The notes beneath the pieces are model-generated. The model was not told where the DNA came from, made no database searches, and saw only the letters and a list, made by a program, of their open reading frames with translations. The position numbers and the translations under genes are program-made. Positions 5,616-18,165 of a stretch of DNA of 32,923 bases are shown here, one piece after another; the stretch's first letter is position 1, and each line of letters opens with the position of its first letter. The DNA is taken from positions 1 through 32,923 of the forward strand of contig JAAPAO010000399.1 of assembly GCA_013115145.1 (NCBI GenBank), given 5' to 3'. This stretch comes from Perkinsus chesapeaki ATCC PRA-425 (lineage: Eukaryota > Protista > Perkinsozoa).

Positions 5616-6559
5616 AGACTTTTCGGTTCAAACTCGTAGCTCACCCTCAAGTCTAAAGATCTGCCGATGATTTCTCACCAATCTCAAGCTGGTAGTTCAT
5701 CTCGCCAAGTTGTTCCGGCCAAAACGGTTCCTTCGATCTCGTTATTTGTACTCTAAATAGTTGAGCATTTTCAATGCTTTTGTTTCGTTTAGTTTGTCCA
5801 CGTTTTCCATTGTTCTCTCCATCTTTAACTATTCGTATCCTTTGTATCTACTCTATCTCTTGAAATATTATATAATCCTTTTAATTAAGTTCCTCTATTA
5901 TATAGTCCGTGTTCACTCCTACATCGCCGGCTGATTTCCAGTAATGTATATGAAGCATCCCACGATTAACTCGATTACCTATTCACAAGTTACCCCTCCA
6001 GGTCGCTGTTTGTTATTTTCTCTATATAACGATGATGAGCATTTTCGCTCCGGCCCGTCAGCTCCTTTCACGTTCCACCATGATAACCCGGCTGACTAGT
6101 GCTCGCTTCGCCTCGACATTCGTCAATGTAATTCCGCAACTCTGCTTCATTACAGACTCTCTACCTTGTTGCAGGCCATAAAGGAGCAGAACGCCTCCTA
6201 CACTAAGAAGGCTCTCAAGTGCTACGAAGAATCTAAAGAGGAGGTTGATAGGAAACTCGACCCTGTACCGCTTGACCGTTTCACTGCTGTCAACAGACCT
6301 TCTGTGTAGGTCTTCAATAGCAGTCCACTGGTATTGTTTATGGAGGGTACTGTGGATGCTCCCAAAGGCCAACTCAGCCTTAACGTCGTCAAGATGCTTA
6401 CCGAGGTACTATCTCCCACATGCCACCTTTCGTATTTACGTAAATACCGTTCCAGATTTCAGCCCTCCCTGAATTAGACAGTGCTTAAATGGTAGATGCC
6501 AGCTTTCGGAGCTGCTGAGGCTTCCTCGTTCATTTCGGCTTACTGTCAGGTGCAAGCCG

Positions 6560-7290
6560 CTCCTCTGGTTACTGTGGACGTCACCGAGCATCCTGCTATA
6601 GCTGGGTAGTATTATGGTGGTGTTATTGCGAATTAAGGACTTCCAGGGATTAGGAATCCGTTGGACTGCCTTCTTGGAGTCTCTGGAATAATTTCTTATA
6701 ATGTCTACAGCTTGGGATAATTAAAGTCTTTATTCGTTGGCAGTGTCATCCGTGACTGTGAACTCAAGTCCGCTGAAGCTACCCATGTGGGCTCATCGAT
6801 AGTAGAATTGGGAGGTCCAATTACTGCAATTGACCTTTATATAATATAAATATATTTTTCCATAAGAAAAAGTGGGTTGCCAAATTTGACCAGGTCCAAA
6901 GAACCTAGTCCGAGACTTTAGCGGATTCGAGTTCGGAGGGACGGATGGCAAAACGCGGAAGATATCTTTTCCATGTTGGCACCTACGTAACCCCACTTTA
7001 TTAGATACACTGTTGCCAAGAGCGGCTCAGAGACCACACCGCACTTGTACTACAACGGCAATTTTTATGGGGACCATGACAGGTAGTAGGGTTACGTTTC
7101 ACTGTGCATGTGAGGCTGCCTATCAGAGTCTTGAGCAAATACAAGAATGGTGACCTTAGGAAGATCGGCACCAACAAGAGGTAAGTGAATAATGCAATTT
7201 CGGTGAGTTACTGGAGATTTAGGTCTGAAGGGGCCTTTGCTGGCGAGCTTCCCATTGGTATGTATTGAGGTGGTGGTTGACTGACAATAG
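6560..7290 (+). pseudogene. Probable heavily decayed non-LTR retrotransposon reverse transcriptase remnant
   Basis: Motif-like peptides in RT order across stops and frameshifts: PSILL*LGSIM (6584), KWVAKF (W at 6872), GTYVTPLY* (6978), FYGD (7063), EAAYQSLEQIQEW (7112-7150), Y..VVVD (7263-7281). FYGD to YLG-like spacing is ~65 codons. Recognised by eye only. Confidence 0.35.
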
Positions 7291-7370
7291 TTTCTTAGAA
7301 ATAGCTTCGTGGATGATATGAACCTGTTGAGTTACCAATTGATAATGTGCCCCGAAAAGCGAAGCGAACC

Positions 7371-7465
7371 ATATCCAAGGATGGGATTTTCGGTACCAAG
7401 AAAGATACCCAAGGATGGGATTTTCGGTATCAAGAAAGATACCCAGGGATGGGATTTTCGGTACC
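7371..7465 (+). repeat. 34-bp tandem repeat, ~2.8 copies
   Basis: Unit ATAYCCARGGATGGGATTTTCGGTAYCAAGAAAG starting at 7371, 7405 and 7439. Confidence 0.95.
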
Positions 7466-8356
7466 TGGCGAGTTTTCGTGCTTCCACGTGAGAGTTAGTT
7501 ATCAGACAATATTGGGGGAAATGAACTCAACGACGATATGATACTAGAACGATGTGTTAACGACAAGACTACTGTATACTTTTGGATGACAGACAAAATT
7601 AACACTGCTACATTCGATAGCGAATGATTCCTTGCCTACCATCCGAGCGCCATCGTGAACTCCGCAACCATCGCAGGATGCAAAAAGTCCCGGCAGATCA
7701 GTAGCAGCCGAGCAAAGGCAATCTCCTTAGCTTGGCTTGCCTTACCAATTAAGATATCGTCTGTCACGAGAAGGCTTTTTGACACCCCACAATTGACAAC
7801 CTTCTCTCACATATCTAAGCCATTTTCGTAAAAGAGTGTGGTTACACTGTATTTCCAATTAACAATAGTCTGGGTATTTATCGCCGGCACAAATAGGCAA
7901 ATAACAGTTTTATACACACTCCCCTTGGCGGCTCCTCTGACCTCATGCATTGTCGTGGGTAGCATTCAGCACGGGCTCATCTATACTCTTAATAGGAGCT
8001 CTGTTAGTGCGTTAAGCTGGGAACGGGATAATGGAGGGACAACTGGAAAGAGTGTGGAGGAATTGTGTATTGAGGTGCCAGTCGGACGTCTTCGATATTG
8101 ACTGTAACGCAACTCGAGCATAAAATGGAAAAGCTTGAGACCCCTAAGATGAATCTGATTCTGGTCCATTATATGGAAGAATGTGAAAAGTGTCTGCTTT
8201 CTGCGACTCGGCCGAAAGCGCGGACTTCTTCTCCCTCACATATAGGTATTCATGTGTATTGACTAATACACACCGAAAATATAATGTCAGAAAAAGGACA
8301 AACCCAAGCAAGGCTAGATTCTACATATCAACCATTTGCCATTTGCGGAAGCATAC

Positions 8357-10177
8357 TCATAATCCCATGCATACTGCTCCAGACGATTTACAGTTTTCCT
8401 CAACGCATTCCAGACACCCCTCAGAGGACGGGTCCGACATGCATGCCCACTTGCAGTTCTTTCTCGCGCATGTGCCAAGTTCACCGAAGCACTCAGAACA
8501 CTCCTCGGTGATAGGAGGCAAATTGAAGGGAGTATTTCCAGCAGTCTTAGTGTGCTTCAAAACACAACCCGCGATCCTGCTTTTCAGCATATAATTTCTA
8601 AAACATCCCATCGTTGCATCAAAAAACTTTGATCTGTCATAAGCTGGGACGCTACTAGATGTCCACCATCGCATCTGATCTCTAGTAGTACATTTACCAC
8701 TAGGCCTGGTAGTAAGCCGGAAAGGCTGAGTACTTGTATTAGACCAACCAGCACTATTCTTAGCCTGAAATCTAACCTTGTATGAAGTATTAGCTCGAAG
8801 ACCGGTAATATCACACCAAGGATCAGAGGTTTCACATAGGGCAGTGCCACTATCATCAATAGCGCGGAAACCGGTCACAGGTAGAGTACATCCTCGATCA
8901 GCAGCTGGAAGAAAGCCTAAAGCGACACCGTCGGAGAACCGTTCATATTGTAGAGGGGAAGGTGCACCAGCTTCACAGTACTCAGTTTCAACGACCAGAC
9001 CGTGAGATTCAGGGCCATTACCCATGGAGTTACTAGCAAAAATAAAGAATGTATAAGTGCTTCCTGGATGAAGTTCATCTACTGTATAGCTCGTATCATC
9101 ACCTGGAACCGTGTAGGCAGCATCACCTTCAGGCGTAATGATAACATAATTGAGGATCATAGCACCATTATCAGATGGAGCAGCCCAAGACAATGTCACA
9201 GAAGTTGATGACGACTCTTTAAGTGCAAATGATGAGACCTGAAACTCGAACTGGAAGATATGGGTCTATCAGGCGGTTAGCTCACCTGGCCAGGTGCAGA
9301 AGGAGCGGGAGTAGGCTCCATGTCAGGTGAACCAGTAGTTAGCGACTCCCCAGGAGCCACCGGTGGAGGCTCGAATGGAATGGGTCGATCGGTGCATACA
9401 AAGTGAGGTCTGCTGAAATCACTGCGACCAATATAGTTTTCAGCCGCTATTCGAAACTGGAAGCACTGAGCTGCGGGGAGACCTCCCACAGTGAACAGCT
9501 GAAGCAGTTGAAAGGTACGATAATTTGGTAGTATCACCACTTCCATCCAGCTATGGGGAATCTCTTCACTACTATTCGCTGGACTATATTGTATAATGTA
9601 TACTCTCACGGTAGCACCCTTGTCATCAGTTGGTGGAGAAATAGCGAACGAAACGCTATCCTCGGAAGTCCGGAATCCCCACTGACCTGAAACGATAAGT
9701 AGTGGACAGCAGGAAAGTATGATACTCACTCGGTGGACTGGGCACATCAGGTGACTTTGTGGTTGCCAAGGCAGTAGGAGATGGATTACTGATACGACCA
9801 TCCTTCATAACGATCTTGTAGCGGACTAGGAGTCCTTCTCTAAAGACCAAGCCAGTAATGTTGCCAGTAGATGCCTTTTCGATATTATAGGGCACTTCTA
9901 GTGCAGCAGTCCATTCTTCATTCGAACCAAGGTCCTTGCCATCATTTAACGTTGTGGCAGCTTGGGTCTCTATAATGTAAGCCTTTGGATTGTATTTCAA
10001 AGCTGTGGTCGTAGGATTGACTACAACTTGCAAGTTCGTGTAGCCCTCAATGATTTCCGGAGGCTCAAGTTCGCCAACATTGACAGTATTCCTCCCGAAG
10101 TACCATGCGAGGGGAACAGAGATACTTATCAATGCACCACCGAATATGACGCCAGCAGCAATAGGGATACATATCAT
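8357..10177 (-). CDS. Membrane-anchored or secreted fibronectin type III repeat protein with 12-Cys C-terminal domain, ~576 aa; exons 10177-9730, 9686-9286, 9238-8357 (5' end uncertain)
   Basis: GT-AG introns 9729-9687 (43 nt) and 9285-9239 (47 nt) fuse three ORFs in frame. N-terminal hydrophobic segment ICIPIAAGVIFGGALISISVPLAWYF; FN3 motifs (VTLSWAAPSDNG, LHPGSTYTFFIFASNSMGNGPES, GLRANTSYKVRFQAKNSAGWS, GLPAAQCFQFRIAAENYIGRS); tail CSECFGELGTCARKNCKWAC...CLECVEENC...CMGL*. Confidence 0.85.
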
Positions 10178-11835
10178 CTTCAAAGATGAGTGCTAAATGA
10201 GGAGCAATGAACGCCTTACCCGGTATTGTCTCTCGTGTCACAGCTTGTGAGGCGTCACCTGCGCGACAAAGGGCCCGAAAGCCTTCTCTGTAGAGTACTA
10301 AATGTCTTGGCTTTCTCAATTGTGTTCAACCGAAGAGAATAGTCTGGGTCCCACGTGTAGTGGAAGAGTCCCGGAATGATATATTGCGTACAACAAGAAC
10401 TTGAGGAATAGTGAAAATCGAAGTGGACTAAAGGAACCAAATCGCAGACCTACGGTCACGATGGACATCACTCGAGACTCTGCAAGTGTGGTTGAGGACC
10501 TTTGGGGAGCCACGCGGCAACGGTTGAGTCCGACTCGTCGACTCGCCAATGAAGCTATGCCAACCCTAAGGGTAGGGATTTCAATCACTCCCCAACAAGG
10601 CCAGAAAGAACCTAGATCGAGAACGTTAGTGAAGTTGATAACTGATCTTGCCCTACTATAATAGTCTTACTATTCGCAACTGGTTCATAATAAGGTCCTT
10701 GAAAACCAGCCATGGCTTGGTCCAACAGTGTCCGAACTATACACATTGTCCGGTGTAGAAACTCGCTGGTAGCCCAGCCTCCGGCGCAGCCGACCTAGGT
10801 AAGAATCTCTATCTGATACGCGACTTGCGCTTATCCATCGCGATCCCTTGGAACACATGTCTCTCGCATCAATCAGGTTGATACTTCGAACTGGAGCGAC
10901 TAGAACGCGCTGTGCAGCTGGAGGTTCTTGGCGCCATTGACCGACGTCCGAAAAGACTAAACTTCGGACTAATGGGGCACCGCGCTGATCGCGCAGAAGA
11001 ATCCCCTATACTGATAGGCTACACTGATCTATATAGGCAGCCGTCATTATTGCGAGAGTATTAGGAGTAACTTCAAATGTAAGGTGACCTTACTAAGGTC
11101 ATACCCGCGATATAACTCGTACAGCATAAATACGAAAGTAGCATAACCCGCTGCAATTTGCTTTATGACTAGCATAAGCTTCCTAAGAATGTCACATATA
11201 TGTTGTCCGAAATTTTCCCCGATCGCATACTCGTTTGTCGAGCACCTTGGATGAGTATACCGATCGACGCGGGAGACGCGGGAAAGCAGTGCACTCGACA
11301 GCAGGTGTTACATTCCAGCAGCAGCCTGTACCAGGAGCAACTACAGTAGTAGTCCTCCGACTACAAGGACCGACAAGTAGAGTGACGGTGCCAGAAGTTT
11401 TTGGAACAGTTTAGGCCTGAATACTCGAGATTTGAAATCGAGGATGCGAAATTCGCTGTTGCGTGTGCGTTCTAGCTGGAAGGCAAAATCATTGACCCTC
11501 AGGGCTTCTTATGAATCACCCGCGGGTTATCCGGGACTGAAATTTCAGACGAAAGCCTTCTTATACCACAGCTATCGCTGCGTGGAGTACGGAGGGAAAA
11601 TGTGGGCTATTCTCAAACAGTTCACAGCTCATCCTTTCTGCGGTCGATGACTTCCTGCACGCGCGCTGTGGGCACGCTCCCGAGGGAGCACGCCCCTCCC
11701 ACTCAGCGGTGCGGGCCTAACAGAAAGGAACTTCTGAGGAGCACGTCATTCGGGGCTCCTCTGCGCCGTCATTACCTTGAAGCGATTCTATAGTTAATTA
11801 CTATCTAAGGTTTATTCCTGTATACTCTAGTTACC

Positions 11836-12360
11836 ATGGACTACCAGCAATGGTCGGCTCTTCTTATCTCTCTGATGTGCGCTATTATATTCTCTGGGCA
11901 AGGTTGCGGGAAGACCCCACCGCCACCGCCACCTTCGCATATTTTCGGGAACTATCGAGCGTTGTTAAATGGTAAGAATTCCGACGCTGTTGGTTATGTC
12001 GAACTAATGTTTCCTGCTCTGGACAATATATGGCTCAATGTCACCTACTATGTTTCCCCTGACACAACGTCGGGAATTTATAGGTATATGGGTGAGCTTT
12101 CCTATACGCCAATGTCAGCATCGTACCCATACGAGCTTTTTAACCTTACTGGAGGCAGCTGGGAGAGGTTTCGTGACTCGATTGTTCAGAGCGGTGTGAG
12201 CAAGCTTCTCCCGGAACCTATTCATAATCGTCCCTATGCCCTGGTGCGCTACAGGACTGAACTCGCTGGAACACCACAAATGTTATATGTTCATTTGACC
12301 AATACCTTACCTCTGATTCTCAGAAGGTATGAGGTCAATTCTTCGAGGAGATCATTCTAA
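11836..12360 (+). CDS. Hypothetical secreted or surface protein, 174 aa
   Basis: Hydrophobic signal-like N-terminus ending SGQGC, then a PPPPPP linker and a beta-rich-looking domain. A possible donor AG|GTATGA near the 3' end may alter the C-terminus. Confidence 0.65.
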   Translation: MDYQQWSALLISLMCAIIFSGQGCGKTPPPPPPSHIFGNYRALLNGKNSDAVGYVELMFPALDNIWLNVTYYVSPDTTSGIYRYMGELSYTPMSASYPYELFNLTGGSWERFRDSIVQSGVSKLLPEPIHNRPYALVRYRTELAGTPQMLYVHLTNTLPLILRRYEVNSSRRSF

Positions 12361-13221
12361 AACCGATACTATCTTAGAGAGCTATGTCTTGAAGTTCAGG
12401 GTTATGTCTTATCAGTCTTGTGTATACCATGTCCGCTCTGAGATCGGTAGCGAGACGTTCGCTAGAGGCGATAGGAAAGTAGTCCCTTAGGATGATAAGA
12501 AGGTGGTTTGGAATTGTATTTCAAGTTGTCAACATTTCTCTTACCTGGCTCAATCCCGTTTTCTGTTGTGTTTGTCAGTGACTGAACGTCTCAGGGGACT
12601 CCTCTGCTGTTATGCACTGTCCGTTCATTTACCTTTCCTAGTCATGGGAAACGTTTCAATCGGTAAACTGCGGGAGTGTTATACCATGGTGTTCGCACGG
12701 ACTTCGGGCCGAAGTCTTCGGCTGCGCAACGGACATCCGTACCCTCCTCACATAGTGTCAAAGTACGGGAAAGAATACAACGCGTCGCTAGGACACAACT
12801 GGCATGGCAGCGGTGTAGATGGAAACCGGATTGATCTGAAGTGATGAACTAAACGTTATTATCATCCTCATCTCCTAGTGAGTAACTCCAATCCTCATGA
12901 GGTTGCCTCTTGCGTGACGTATAAAAGTTGTGACGCTGTTTTGCCATAACATATCAGATGGAGGATGCACGCGATTGCTCACGTCACCCGAGGCGCTAAA
13001 TCCCGGAAACCCACTACAATTGCGAACTCGATGCCACATCTAATCTGTCACGGATTACATGCAGCTATGCATCTAAGCCTATGCCTGCGCCGTCACTATC
13101 TGGGTCAGATAATCTGACTTTTAGTGATCTCACTAGCTAGTCCAAGTACTGATACGGTATATTGTAGTCTATTGCTGATACATTACCGTATTCAGTTGTT
13201 ATCCTCTTCATTGACCGGATA

Positions 13222-14260
13222 ATGCTGTTCTTCCGTATTGCTATCCAGCTTATGGCTGTGCATAACCTGGCTGCTCAGGTGAGTCTTTCGTTTCCACCCG
13301 CATCTAGCATCCCAGCGTTTGGTCAGGATAACTGCAGCGCTGTCTGCGATGTTGCTCCTGGTTGTTCTCATCACCCTAGGGGTGATGTTCCGGGGCCTTT
13401 CTGTGACCGGCTCTCGCGTTTTGGTTATCCCGTCTGCTATGGAACGTAAGACAGTCAGGCTTCGTATTATTGATCAACTGGCTTGTGGATGGTAGATTTG
13501 CATCTGGTGCCTCCTCAGGTTCTATACCGACAGCACAAAGACGAGGGTATGTTATGAACCAATATTTTCTATCTGCCCGACAGAATTCCCATTCGCTTGC
13601 GATGACCCGCTTCCTATGCCAAGAACTACAACCACACCTACAACCACACCCACAACCACAACCACAACCACAACCACAACCACAACTACAACTACAACTA
13701 CAACTACAAATACAACTACAACCACAACCACAACTACAACTACAACTACAAATACAACCACAACCACAACTACAACTACAACTACAACTACAACTACAAC
13801 TACAACTACAACTACAACTACAAATACAACTACAACTACAACCACAACCACCGAGCCGCCTGTTGTCACAGTATGCCGGAAGTCGGTCACTGCTCCCTCA
13901 CCCATGCTTTCAGGATTACTGTAAAATCGCATGCGACACTCTCGAGGCTTGTAGACATGCCGAAAAACCTCCAACCTGTGCCCGAGATGCCTGTCATCCT
14001 TATGGGGTGTGTGAGCGAATGTAAGCCTCGAAAGCGATTTCAGCAAATTGGAAATCAAATACGGTGAACTACAAACTCTACTACGGCTTGACAAGGCTTC
14101 ATAATGTGAACGAAGAAGTTTATTGGTTTTCGGTACTGTTTATGTTAGATACTATACCGATTGCACAAAGAGCAAGCTCTGCTACGATACTGAGCTCAGT
14201 CCTTGTGATAAGAGCTATCCGTTCGGCTGCTGTGATCCTGTACCTTGCCGTTCTGAATAA
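13222..14260 (+). CDS. Secreted mucin-like protein, ~248 aa: signal peptide, Cys domain A, Thr linker, Cys domain B; exons 13222-13278, 13327-13445, 13519-13870, 13914-14020, 14149-14260
   Basis: Four GT-AG introns (48, 73, 43, 128 nt) give one frame. Domain A: DNCSAVC..PGC..FC..VCYGTFYTDSTKTRVCYEP..CP..PFAC. Domain B: DYCKIAC..EAC..TC..VCERIYYTDCTKSKLCYDT..C..PFGC. Intron positions and phases match between the two domains. Confidence 0.85.
13625..13852 (+). repeat. (ACAACY)n hexamer array encoding ~76 codons of poly-Thr with 2 Pro and 3 Asn interruptions
   Basis: Directly visible ACAACC/ACAACT units with ACAAAT interruptions. Confidence 0.97.
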
Positions 14261-14634
14261 CTTTATCGAATCACCTCTTCTTTCCTTGCTGGACTGTTTT
14301 TGAACTACTCCGTTGCCGGGAAGAGATGCTCTCAGTTTCTAGTGTAGACCTATTGATAAGGTAGACCAATCTTATTATTTGCCTCTTTCCGCTCTGAGTC
14401 CGTGCTACTGGCGTCCATTATGGGAGATATCTCACGAATATGTGCCTCGAAATTTCGTTGGATGGATGGAGTTTCGCTCAGCAATCTTCAGAGGTATTTT
14501 ACGACCTCGGTTTTCCACCTTTCCCGGTTGCGTGATAGTGTAAATCGTTGCTCAGTTGAGCAGTTGCCAAACAGCAAGTCGCCATGGGTGACGCATGATG
14601 GGTCTAGCATTGCGTTGTGTCGGCGAGGATCTAC

Positions 14635-14704
14635 AGCAATGAGGATATCCTCATTGCTATCTCATAGAGCAATATATCTCATAGAGATCCTCATTGAGGA
14701 TATC
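14635..14704. repeat. Nested palindrome and direct-repeat cluster
   Basis: Perfect 24-bp palindrome AGCAATGAGGAT|ATCCTCATTGCT (14635-14658), ATCTCATAGAG twice (14659, 14676), ATCCTCA-T-TGAGGAT (14687-14701). Confidence 0.9.
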
Positions 14705-15143
14705 TATCATAGGTACCGCACATGTCCTCTATAAGACACAGCTCGTTTGTCTGACATCAAATCATTGATGTAATTCGTAGAAATAGAAATTGATGAATTC
14801 AGGAGAGTCTGTTGCTATGTTCTGTATGCTTGAGAAGACTTGCCATCGAAACCATGATTGGCCAGTTCACTAAACTGAGCTCAGGCACTAGTCGGAACTA
14901 CCGGATGTGACTGTCACAATCCAGCTAGTGTACACTGTACACTGTACAGTTCACTGTGTACTAACCAGACTATCTGTCATACTTGAATCTCCGCCGCAAT
15001 ACACATTACAGGATGGTATCAAGAAGCCCACTCCTGGAATTCCCGTGTTAAGACTCCCGGCCAATAAAGGCATCTCTCGAAAGCTCTTGCTGTTCTCTAG
15101 TCCCGTGTCAATCTTTTCTCTATTCGGCTATATACTTACTGAC

Positions 15144-15192
15144 CTTGCGAACCTTTGTATGTATGAACTTCATACATACAAAGGTTCGCAAG
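15144..15192. repeat. Perfect 49-bp palindrome (24-bp arms, 1-nt centre)
   Basis: CTTGCGAACCTTTGTATGTATGAA-C-TTCATACATACAAAGGTTCGCAAG. Confidence 0.97.
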
Positions 15193-15436
15193 CCTTAGGC
15201 TACGCAGATGAACTTGCTAGCAGGTTCGAACTTCCGTTGTTAAATTGGCCACCTGGACTGCTGTATGTAACATTATTCCTGCATCCATCTACGCAATAAC
15301 AGACTGAGCGGCGGTTTCCTTCGCTTTCTGACTCGGTCTCGTTTGTGCGTCATTTCTGCGCCTTTTAGCCTCTGTTGGGGGACAGCTGTCACACAAAGCG
15401 TAGCGAGAGGGATTTGTAGCACGCTGTGCGCTGTGT

Positions 15437-15459
15437 ACCCTAGGCTTTTTATACTCAAG
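15437..15459 (+). other. Second, more degenerate spliced-leader relic
   Basis: ACCcTAGgCtTTTTataCTCAAG aligns to ACCGTAGCCATTTTGGCTCAAG at 17/22 positions with a 1-nt insertion; ends 34 nt upstream of the end of the strong relic. Confidence 0.45.
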
Positions 15460-15474
15460 AATAGTTGTACTTTT

Positions 15475-15493
15475 GTAGCGATCTTGGCTCAAG
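15475..15493 (+). other. Spliced-leader relic (Perkinsus/dinoflagellate-type SL)
   Basis: GTAGCGATCTTGGCTCAAG = 18/19 identical to the 3' 19 nt of ACCGTAGCCATCTTGGCTCAAG; followed by CTTTTCCT-ATG, not GT, so it is not an SL RNA gene. Confidence 0.85.
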
Positions 15494-15501
15494 CTTTTCC
15501 T

Positions 15502-15597
15502 ATGTCTGAAAAGGGTTTAAACGTTGTCACAGGATCTGGGGAAGAAGTACCCACCAACACTCTAACCGGTGGGTTTTATAGTGTACCGTTTAATTGA
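15502..15597 (+). CDS. Short ORF directly behind the SL relic (MSEKGLNVVTGSGEEVPTNTLTGGFYSVPFN*); retro-fragment, first exon or micropeptide
   Basis: ATG 8 nt after the relic's CAAG. Candidate donors at 15569 and 15573 would need atypically short (28-34 nt) introns. Confidence 0.3.
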   Translation: MSEKGLNVVTGSGEEVPTNTLTGGFYSVPFN

Positions 15598-15799
15598 AAG
15601 GGGCCACACACGGGGTTTCGGTGGAGCTATCCTGCAGGATACTATCGCTGAAACGCAACAGTACTTGTTGATAATAACAGCTCAAGATTAACAGCGAGGC
15701 AATGAGCCCGATGCAGCTAAAGTGCATATGAATAAAACGTGCACCACGAATAGGTCTGAATATCTTAACTGAATAACAACGATTAACCTGAAACTGCAG

Positions 15800-18165
15800 T
15801 GTCGGCGTATTCAAGAGGATAGCTCACTTTTAAGGATCTGATTATGGCCCAGACCGGGCGGCGGCAAGAGCAAGCGGAACCGAGTGGCACGCTTGCCGTT
15901 CCGCTTACATAACTCACCACGAGAACTGAAAGGCGCTACCATTGTTTGCATCATCAAAGCACCAACGATAACTTACCGAGATACAGTCGATGCCTTCTTG
16001 AACGCTTTCTCACGTGAATCACCGGCAGCTGCGCTACTTAGTGTGGACTTGTGGGCCTCATTGCTATCTACGCAAAAGACAACAATCGCACTATCACGAC
16101 GAGAGCTCCTCACTTCGATGTAACGCTGATGCACGGTCGGTATTTTTGTGTCGATCTTCCGCTACTGGAGAGCGACTGTGGTAATGGTGGTGATGGCTGG
16201 GCGCATGATGATAATTAGCCAACCTGCCAAGGGTCGACGACGCAGCCCGCTCGAGTGAGTCATCCGAACTTACTCGAGCAAGCGAAAGTGAGACTCCAAA
16301 TGTGAGGGATGATGACGAATGTAAGAGATGACGCACGGTGGCACAGGGAGCTCACGACTGAAGGCCATGCCACCAACAATCTTAGTGGCTCCTCTGAGGA
16401 TTCTCTGCCTGTCACTTCGAGGCGTAATGTCAGTGTGAAAGCGCGTGGTCGAGGTCGCTAGCCCCATGTCCAAGACCGACATAAACCCGCCGATGTCTTG
16501 CGGCGGTGGCACTACGCGTCCCGCGCTGGCCTGCAGCTCTTCGGCTCGCTTGAGCTCCAGCAAACGGTCTATCTCATCATCAATTAAGGCCTCTACGGTC
16601 AAGTTTCGGTGATCGTCGTAGTGCCAGTCGTCGCGATTTCCCTCGCCGACAGCCTCCCAATAAGTGATGTCGCTATTCTCTTCATCGGAAACTGATGCTT
16701 CTTCTTCGGCTGGGACCGGGCGACTGGTCTCTGGATCGCTAAGATCAGCGAAATCGTCCTCGATCCCCTCGTCTATCACAAAGGAGTCTCTCGGCTCTTG
16801 TTTGACGAGTCGATTAGCGGCAGCAGCCGGCGGTTCTATCCGAACAGGAGACTTGTGCACAGGCCGCGAGCGCGGTCGATTCTTAGGGGTGGAGTCCCGA
16901 GCAGCCTTAGTAGAGGCCAGTGGCGCTTCCACAACGGGACGCAACTGTATGGCTTGCGACGCAGCTATGGCTGATTGAATCTGGTAAAACCGAGATACCC
17001 TTCCAGGCTCGCGCTCGAGCCCTACTGTTATTTTCCGGGCCGGTGGAGGCTCGTCAGAAATGCCAACTAAAACTGGTCGCTTCACTTTAATCCTCGCAGC
17101 TCGACCAATCCGCTCCCTCGGCGGTCTCTGCTGACTTGGACTCCTGTCAGCATTTCCAAGATCCTGCCTGCCTAACAAGAGCGAATTCACAATTCGATGG
17201 CCGTCGAAATTAGCAATACCCTGTCGGGCGGCGGCGGCGGCGGTGTTACAGGCTTTTGGGCTACTGGCCGGCTTGGGGCGCTCTGCCTCCGGCTCGTCCT
17301 CATTAACCGGGCGAGCGTGCTCAACAGGGCGGATTCTCGAGGAGGGAGGCCTAGAAATAGGTCAAGGTCATTTGCGGCGACCGACGCTGTCGTACGCTAA
17401 CTGTATCTTTCTCATAACTGCAACCTTCACAGACTTGGGCATTTTACCGTTCTGACTCCGCCGGCGATAGCGCAGCACTAACGCTCCCAGGGCAGTCTGA
17501 GAATAGTAATAATGCAGGGTGGAAGGATCGAACCTGGGTCGTCTTACGGCCAGAGTGATGACACCCATACCAACCAGCTCCACTGCAGACTCTCTTCGAA
17601 CTCCAGGTGGCGTCATCGGTTCATACGCGTAATCCCAGAATGATTCTGCCGCCTGTCTCGCTAAGGTCCTTACGTATTCGGGGTGCCGGTTGGAATCCTG
17701 GTCGGCCTAAACGATGTCGCTGCCAGGGATCGAACCTCCATCTGGGTCTACCGATCGGAGTAACCGTTCGAGCTGCTCGACAATCGCCAGAGTCGCATCA
17801 TCGTAATTCGCTTGTTCCTATTAGGGGAACTCTGTCATTCGCGACACGTTCAGAGTTTTACCGAGTTGCCCACTGAATCAACGACACTCTGCAGGATGTA
17901 CTGAATAATATCGTGTTCGCTCGCGGCACCAATTTGGGTAAAGTCGTCTGAGACGGAGTGGGCGGGCGGATTTGTGAAATGCCTTACGCTCTTTCTTCCG
18001 AAATAGGTCGTCAACAGCTACGCTAGTACAAGTGGATTCACCAAGCCTGATGCCGTGGCTGCTCCTGGCCCCACCGTAGCTCTGAGGAAGAAACTGATAG
18101 AAAAACCGGAAAATGTATAAAAATAACCGGACCAGGGGTTGTGGGGGGCTTAGGCCGGTATACAT
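15800..18165 (-). CDS. Multi-exon hypothetical low-complexity protein; exons 18165-18133, 18081-17988, 17947-17862, 17817-17752, 17706-17571, 17496-17448, 17350-17220, 17171-~16274, then uncertain 3' exons to ~15800
   Basis: Seven GT-AG introns (51, 40, 44, 45, 74, 97, 48 nt) keep one frame: MYTGLSPPQPL|SYGG..FRKKE|HDFTQ..VGNS|EQANYDD..LLRS|ADQDS..ELV|DCPG..SER|PPSS..ARQ|GRQDLG, joining the 306-aa ORF. Further GTAAGT donors at 16273 and near 15970. Confidence 0.7.
17497..17570 (-). other. tRNA-derived 74-nt spliceosomal intron
   Basis: TGGAGCTGGTTG|GTATGG (A-box/D-loop provides GT) ...ACGACCCAGGTTCGATCCTT (B-box) ...ATTATTACTATTCTCAG. Removal is required to keep the frame. Confidence 0.65.
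17707..17751 (-). other. tRNA-derived 45-nt spliceosomal intron
   Basis: CTCCGATCG|GTAGAC (D-loop-like) ...GGAGGTTCGATCCCTGGC (B-box)...GTTTAG. The retained intron ends in an in-frame TAG. Confidence 0.6.

Follow-up and report, generated by a model that had tools for sequence, protein, structure and literature searches.

The window analyzed here is a stretch of 32,923 nucleotides of Perkinsus chesapeaki ATCC PRA-425 (contig JAAPAO010000399.1, positions 1 to 32,923, forward strand). Between a plus-strand region that ends near 14100 and a convergent minus-strand gene that extends from about 16094 to 17190 or beyond, it carries a short copy of the 3' part of a spliced leader (SL), the surroundings of which are listed in Table 1. 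The plus-strand 19-mer at 15475 to 15493, GTAGCGATCTTGGCTCAAG, is identical at 18 of its 19 bases to positions 4 to 22 of PmaSL1, the 22-nt L-type leader of Perkinsus (ACCGTAGCCATCTTGGCTCAAG; PMC3101222), and the sole mismatch is a change of C to G at 15480, which is SL position 9. The 19-mer is followed directly by CT (15494 to 15495) instead of GT, and an 8-nt spacer, CTTTTCCT, at 15494 to 15501 leads to the ATG at 15502 to 15504. The sequence and its comparison with PmaSL1 are in agreement with the first-pass annotation, made from the letters of this DNA, which had reported a match of 18 of 19 to the SL 3' end with an ATG 8 nt downstream and no GT after it; the T-rich stretch that it had placed upstream is a fair but modest one, with about 15 T in 30 bases.

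Table 1. Coordinates of the SL copy in the window and of the features around it
Feature	Position	Strand	Basis
SL relic, SL positions 4 to 22, one mismatch	15475..15493	+	SL match; alignment with L008 and L022; BLAST against 50 SL-like loci
TTT in place of ACC/TCC	15472..15474	+	Sequence; comparison with other copies
TTTTGTAG, candidate trans-splice acceptor	15471..15478	+	Form like that of the neighboring gene's cis-intron acceptors
Pyrimidine-rich spacer, 8 nt, 5'-UTR-like	15494..15501	+	Sequence
Short ORF, 31 codons plus stop, probably no gene	15502..15597	+	ORF list; family, paralogue, and gene-record searches
Remaining single-copy DNA up to the convergent minus-strand gene	15598..16093	+	ORF, repeat, and RNA-family searches

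The three bases that precede GTAG in the window are TTT, where the SL has ACC, and over the full 22 nt the identity amounts to 18 of 22 with the ACC form and 19 of 22 with a T-initial TCC variant that is present in nine other SL copies of the same genome. Two readings of the TTT may be considered: (i) the copy may be truncated at its 5' end by 3 nt, or (ii) a full 22-nt copy may have undergone two C-to-T changes, one of them at the CpG of the SL. A T right before GTAG is frequent in other copies, with ACC/ACT and TCC/TCT alternating within families, and most of the copies in the genome that are without the CC of the SL carry it (counts that are inflated by family membership). For the SL-like copies genome-wide, this preceding T suggests that a C-to-T change at the CpG, and not a truncated 5' end, is responsible.

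The gene on the right of the copy connects the window to Perkinsus olseni. The minus-strand ORF at 16273 to 17190 is the orthologue of P. olseni FOZ62_016700 (44% identity, residues 14 to 282), a hypothetical protein that is its only homologue. The TAA stop of this 306-aa ORF overlaps a GTAAGT donor at 16266 to 16272, and splicing to an AG at about 16223 may add 43 codons and bring the stop to 16094; the codon score of this extension is negative. The next gene on the P. olseni contig (L052, 6 kb) matches the window at 6023 to 7268. Alignment between the two is restricted to exons, and a scan of the contig, the intergenic DNA of which does not align to the window, found no SL-like motif even at 5 mismatches. 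The two syntenic genes lie 1.2 to 1.8 kb apart in P. olseni versus about 9 kb in the window, which may reflect a lineage-specific insertion or rearrangement or else a difference in the assembly of the P. olseni contig. The extra DNA of the window (7268 to 16336) comprises a minus-strand series of ORFs at 8357 to 10183 (fibronectin-III-like by eye), a signal-peptide-like ORF at 11836 to 12360, a Thr/Gln-Pro low-complexity tract at 13470 to 14024, and about 2 kb, with the SL copy inside it, that shows no convincing coding sequence. A perfect palindrome, unique in the genome and built of two 24-nt arms that are separated by 1 nt, lies at 15144 to 15192, about 280 bp upstream of the copy. An Rfam search of 14000 to 16600 returned only a subthreshold match to a miRNA hairpin model, on this palindrome (30 bits; gathering score, 90).

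Chance is excluded as the source of the SL match, since a scan of the window at up to 3 mismatches gave 1 match against 0.01 expected from shuffles, and a scan of the 41.7-Mb assembly at up to 2 mismatches gave 60 matches against 1 with a reversed control pattern. By our own arithmetic, about 0.02 matches at up to 1 mismatch would be expected by chance in 83 million positions. These controls bear out the earlier claim that the match is not fortuitous, and the 60 SL-like matches are the yield of the genome-wide relic scan that the first-pass annotation had called for. The leader is the organism's own, since two loci, L008 and L022 (contigs C411 and C2742), carry ACC, the exact 19-mer, and an SL-type intron, GTAAATATCC... 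(GTAAAT), that resembles the SL RNA intron of Perkinsus marinus; this was also the check on the concern, voiced with the original observation, that the SL of the organism might differ from the sequence in the window. No loci other than L008 and L022, which have the upstream flank and the intron in common with each other, resemble true SL RNA genes of the L type. Both are close to a contig start, at a distance of up to about 600 bases for L008 and 300 for L022, and the SL RNA gene arrays are probably collapsed or unassembled in this assembly. The S-type leader of P. marinus, 21 nt long, has a single match, at 1 mismatch, in the whole assembly and is thus essentially absent from it.

The copy in the window is neither an SL RNA gene nor a pseudogene of one, because it shares neither the promoter-side flank nor the intron with L008 and L022: in the alignment, the three have no more in common than exon positions G4 to G22, with GTAG at the start and the final G at the end. 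A candidate SL RNA gene or pseudogene at this position was thus ruled out on the lack of a GT donor, of a conserved intron, and of a conserved upstream flank. When 15300 to 16300 was compared by BLAST with 50 other SL-bearing loci, only the 19 to 23 nt of the leader itself matched, and the similarity to 59 other SL-like copies likewise spans no more than the stretch from GTAG to the final G of the exon. The same 1-kb stretch is single copy, a DNA search of the assembly returning only itself. Membership of a repeat family or of an SL-capped LINE was also ruled out, given a single-copy locus with no shared flank, no retroelement ORF, and no Pfam match.

Clustering of the 60 copies by their downstream sequence set apart the two SL RNA genes; the other copies fall into about a dozen families and roughly twenty singletons, one of which is the copy in the window. 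The families have 2 to 6 copies each, many of them with the upstream flank also shared, and a spacing of about 6 kb was seen on one contig. Other relics of the genome are likewise followed by a short pyrimidine- or T/G-rich stretch and then an ATG. Exact SL copies 5.7 to 6.6 kb apart on one contig were observed on contigs C8, C61, C919, and C2061 (L001 to L004, L011 to L012, and L018 to L019), where the sequence flanking the SL is conserved on either side and some of the copies are followed by long ORFs that stay open for more than 420 to 490 aa. The ORF after the relic in L019 encodes a CCHC zinc knuckle, which fits retroelement ORF1 proteins, and these copies have the appearance of retroelement-like units, in tandem or clustered, that carry an SL internally. 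At one further locus (L050, C2799:30752-30829), two SL-like 19-mers with two mismatches each lie 59 nt apart in a short tandem repeat.

The sequence downstream of the copy was searched for the remains of a retrogene. The ATG at 15502 opens 31 codons only, and there is no other notable plus-strand ORF before the convergent minus-strand gene. A Pfam search of ten ORFs from 11836 to 16336 gave nothing above threshold, a protein search of the assembly with the 31-aa peptide returned the locus itself only, and the 31-aa and 84-aa ORFs are absent from the recorded gene products. The codon-usage score of the 31-codon ORF, +3.7 bits or 0.12 per codon, comes from too few codons to decide, and the predicted fold of 15475 to 15760 is unremarkable (z = -1.07). 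The body of an inserted cDNA could lie only in the DNA from 15598 to 16093, the convergent gene following within about 600 bp, and this interval is free of long ORFs and A-runs and matches no RNA family. A poly(A) trace was sought as an A-run in 15494 to 16400 and a target-site duplication as a direct repeat flanking the 5' edge of the relic, and neither was found. The hallmarks of a retrogene are therefore all missing: the 31-codon ORF does not qualify as an intact intron-less one, no family, paralogue, or parent goes with it, and neither a poly(A) trace (A-run) nor a target-site duplication (direct repeat) is present. An intron-containing parent gene, for which the first-pass annotation had suggested a search, is found at neither the DNA nor the protein level, the DNA search with 15300 to 16300 having covered one fragmented assembly of 3544 contigs. 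What had been described as the footprint of a retroposed trans-spliced mRNA in front of an ATG is accordingly upheld as a genuine DNA-encoded relic, with similarity that ends at the SL exon boundary, and is not upheld as a relic in front of a gene, given the 31-codon ORF, no parent or paralogue by DNA or protein, and no poly(A) or target-site duplication. We also considered a second, older relic in CTCAAG (15454 to 15459) and GCTCAAG (15680 to 15686) and rejected it, as both are short enough to arise by chance and their spacing is unfit for tandem recycling.

The form of TTTTGTAG resembles that of the cis-intron acceptors of the neighboring gene (tgtgtag, tgtcag, and tattag). It is thus possible in form as the candidate trans-splice acceptor proposed in the first-pass annotation, use of which would give an SL followed by a 15-nt relic. 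The corresponding genomic arrangement, which resplicing at the internal AG leaves behind in dinoflagellates, was sought with a 25-nt junction pattern in which a full SL is directly followed by the 15-nt relic, and no clean case was found genome-wide, the one doubtful match, with 3 mismatches, being a local CTCGAG repeat. Exact copies of the 15-mer occur 36 times in the genome, with GTAG directly before 32 of them; the other four are an indel variant, a deletion variant within a family, a decayed copy (TAAG for GTAG), and one copy with an unclear 5' edge. Since tandem relics of SL plus 15 nt are lacking, the genome bears no sign that the internal AG has been reused and the product reintegrated.

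That the similarity stops exactly at the 3' end of the SL exon is direct evidence for an RNA-derived origin of the copy. The source is taken to be a spliced RNA because a copy of an SL RNA gene would bring the GTAAAT intron with it, which a spliced product would not, and the confinement of the match to the SL across 50 loci is the pattern expected of independent mRNAs with one common leader. On balance, we consider it probable that the copy goes back to reverse transcription of a trans-spliced RNA, with the cDNA or only a 5' part of it entering noncoding DNA, and that the relic is now a nonfunctional singleton. The reverse transcriptase would probably have come from retroelements, which we infer from their abundance in the genome; retroelement machinery lies beside other relics, as in the zinc knuckle of L019 and the families at about 6-kb spacing. 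The product would have been inserted between two genes, and the present remnant would be a single-copy processed pseudogene or cDNA fragment that probably has no function and is not a working retrogene. Decay and loss of function are probable in view of the 31-codon ORF, the lack of a family match, and the motif-free syntenic contig of P. olseni.

One change in 19 suggests a modest age for the relic, which is at odds with the lack of a parent in the assembly. This state of preservation, combined with the lack of a parent, a poly(A) trace, and a target-site duplication, is more in line with capture of a short cDNA at a break than with a complete retrocopy made by a LINE; alternatively, the parent could be missing from the fragmented assembly. 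Processed pseudogenes are one known outcome of reverse transcription, and cDNA fragments captured at chromosome breaks are another, e.g., in the capture mediated by Ty1 reverse transcriptase in yeast. Capture at breaks explains the absence of poly(A) and of a target-site duplication, and the relic would resemble such fragments as a single-copy, RNA-derived insertion without function, a membership that we infer for an insertion with no defined parent or boundaries.

Several other explanations have to be weighed against reverse transcription followed by decay. If the locus were a live retrogene or micro-gene, its transcript would receive a new SL at the internal AG (15477 to 15478) or upstream and would encode the 31-residue peptide or a longer spliced product. 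Such a gene would be in keeping with the good preservation of the relic, the ATG placed 8 nt past it, the likeness of TTTTGTAG to local acceptors, and a per-codon score like that of real exons, though with few bits in total; it is nevertheless unlikely, as the ORF is so short, its product has no homologue, paralogue, family match, or called gene, the syntenic P. olseni contig is without an SL-like motif, and no clean tandem relic exists genome-wide. A more far-reaching version, in which the inserted SL exon, with its ready-made YAG acceptor and leader, would have seeded a new trans-spliced transcript for the 31-residue peptide, appears very improbable to us; if true, it would be a case of an SL relic driving de novo gene birth in a perkinsid.

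The SL exon might also have reached this site as DNA, without an RNA intermediate, through crossover or recombination or with an SL-containing locus as the template of repair synthesis, an alternative named in previous work (PMC3101222). The failure to find poly(A), a target-site duplication, or a parent would be accounted for in this way, and many other SL-like copies lie in repeats with a conserved upstream flank that have spread as DNA units or tandem arrays. On the other hand, copying as DNA would normally bring some flank, no flank on either side is common to the window and the other SL-bearing loci, and the identity breaks off precisely where the SL exon has its splice junction, so that we assign a low probability to this route. 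The existence of SL-like families, which make up most of the 60 matches, raises the further prospect of a decayed SL RNA gene or a decayed member of a repeat or retroelement family derived from a LINE 5' end; with no GT, no intron similarity, and no shared promoter flank, at a single-copy locus with no retroelement ORF after the relic and a convergent gene about 600 bp away, this is quite unlikely. An artifact, be it a fortuitous match or an assembly chimera of cDNA or adapter origin, is extremely improbable: shuffled and reversed controls exclude chance, the relic lies in mid-contig between genes syntenic with P. olseni, it carries a mismatch and is without the first 3 nt of the SL, unlike a primer, and sixty similar sites are spread over many contigs.

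Relics of this kind have precedents in the genus. In P. marinus, more than 100 genomic copies of PmaSL have no recognizable intron and a variable downstream sequence, no SL-RNA-like transcripts of these copies were detectable, and SL exons occur in some genes, for which reverse transcription of SL-bearing mRNA has been postulated as the cause (PMC3101222). Intron-less genomic SL copies, some of them beside genes, have been on record for P. marinus since 2011. The copy in the window has in common with those of P. marinus (Zhang et al. 2011; PMC3101222) the genus, the 22-nt L-type leader, and the lack of an SL intron downstream; the downstream sequence of the P. marinus copies is also variable and sometimes adjoins protein-coding sequence. 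The P. marinus copies are, however, mostly T-initial and situated in tandem repeats (PMC3101222), whereas the one described here comes from another species and occurs as a singleton, its flanks being unique. Two published "SL-like" primer sequences (PMC3101222) match families of the P. chesapeaki genome. Compared with the L-type SL RNA genes of Perkinsus, the relic has an exon that is identical save for one base and the first three but is without their GT donor, conserved intron, and conserved upstream flank.

Relic leaders are well described in dinoflagellates (PMC12014239). As in DinoRL (Slamovits and Keeling 2008; PMC12014239; PMC6050394), the window has a DNA-encoded leader remnant 5' of an ATG, and the origin postulated for both is reverse transcription of a trans-spliced mRNA. 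DinoRL is defined on transcripts, in which a fresh SL is followed by a 15-nt relic spliced at the internal AG, often in tandem and before intact genes; the relic of P. chesapeaki, in contrast, is known from genomic DNA and has neither an intact gene behind it nor a tandem counterpart of SL plus 15 nt in the genome.

To conclude, the locus is an ordinary singleton relic that is probably nonfunctional. SL relics naturally tag the traffic from RNA to DNA and could be used to count and date retroposition events in perkinsids, as in dinoflagellates. Our results suggest that the relics of P. chesapeaki are of the first generation, without the tandem arrangement of SL plus 15 nt that is typical of dinoflagellates, which points to relic recycling that is less frequent, or follows another mode, at the base of the lineage.
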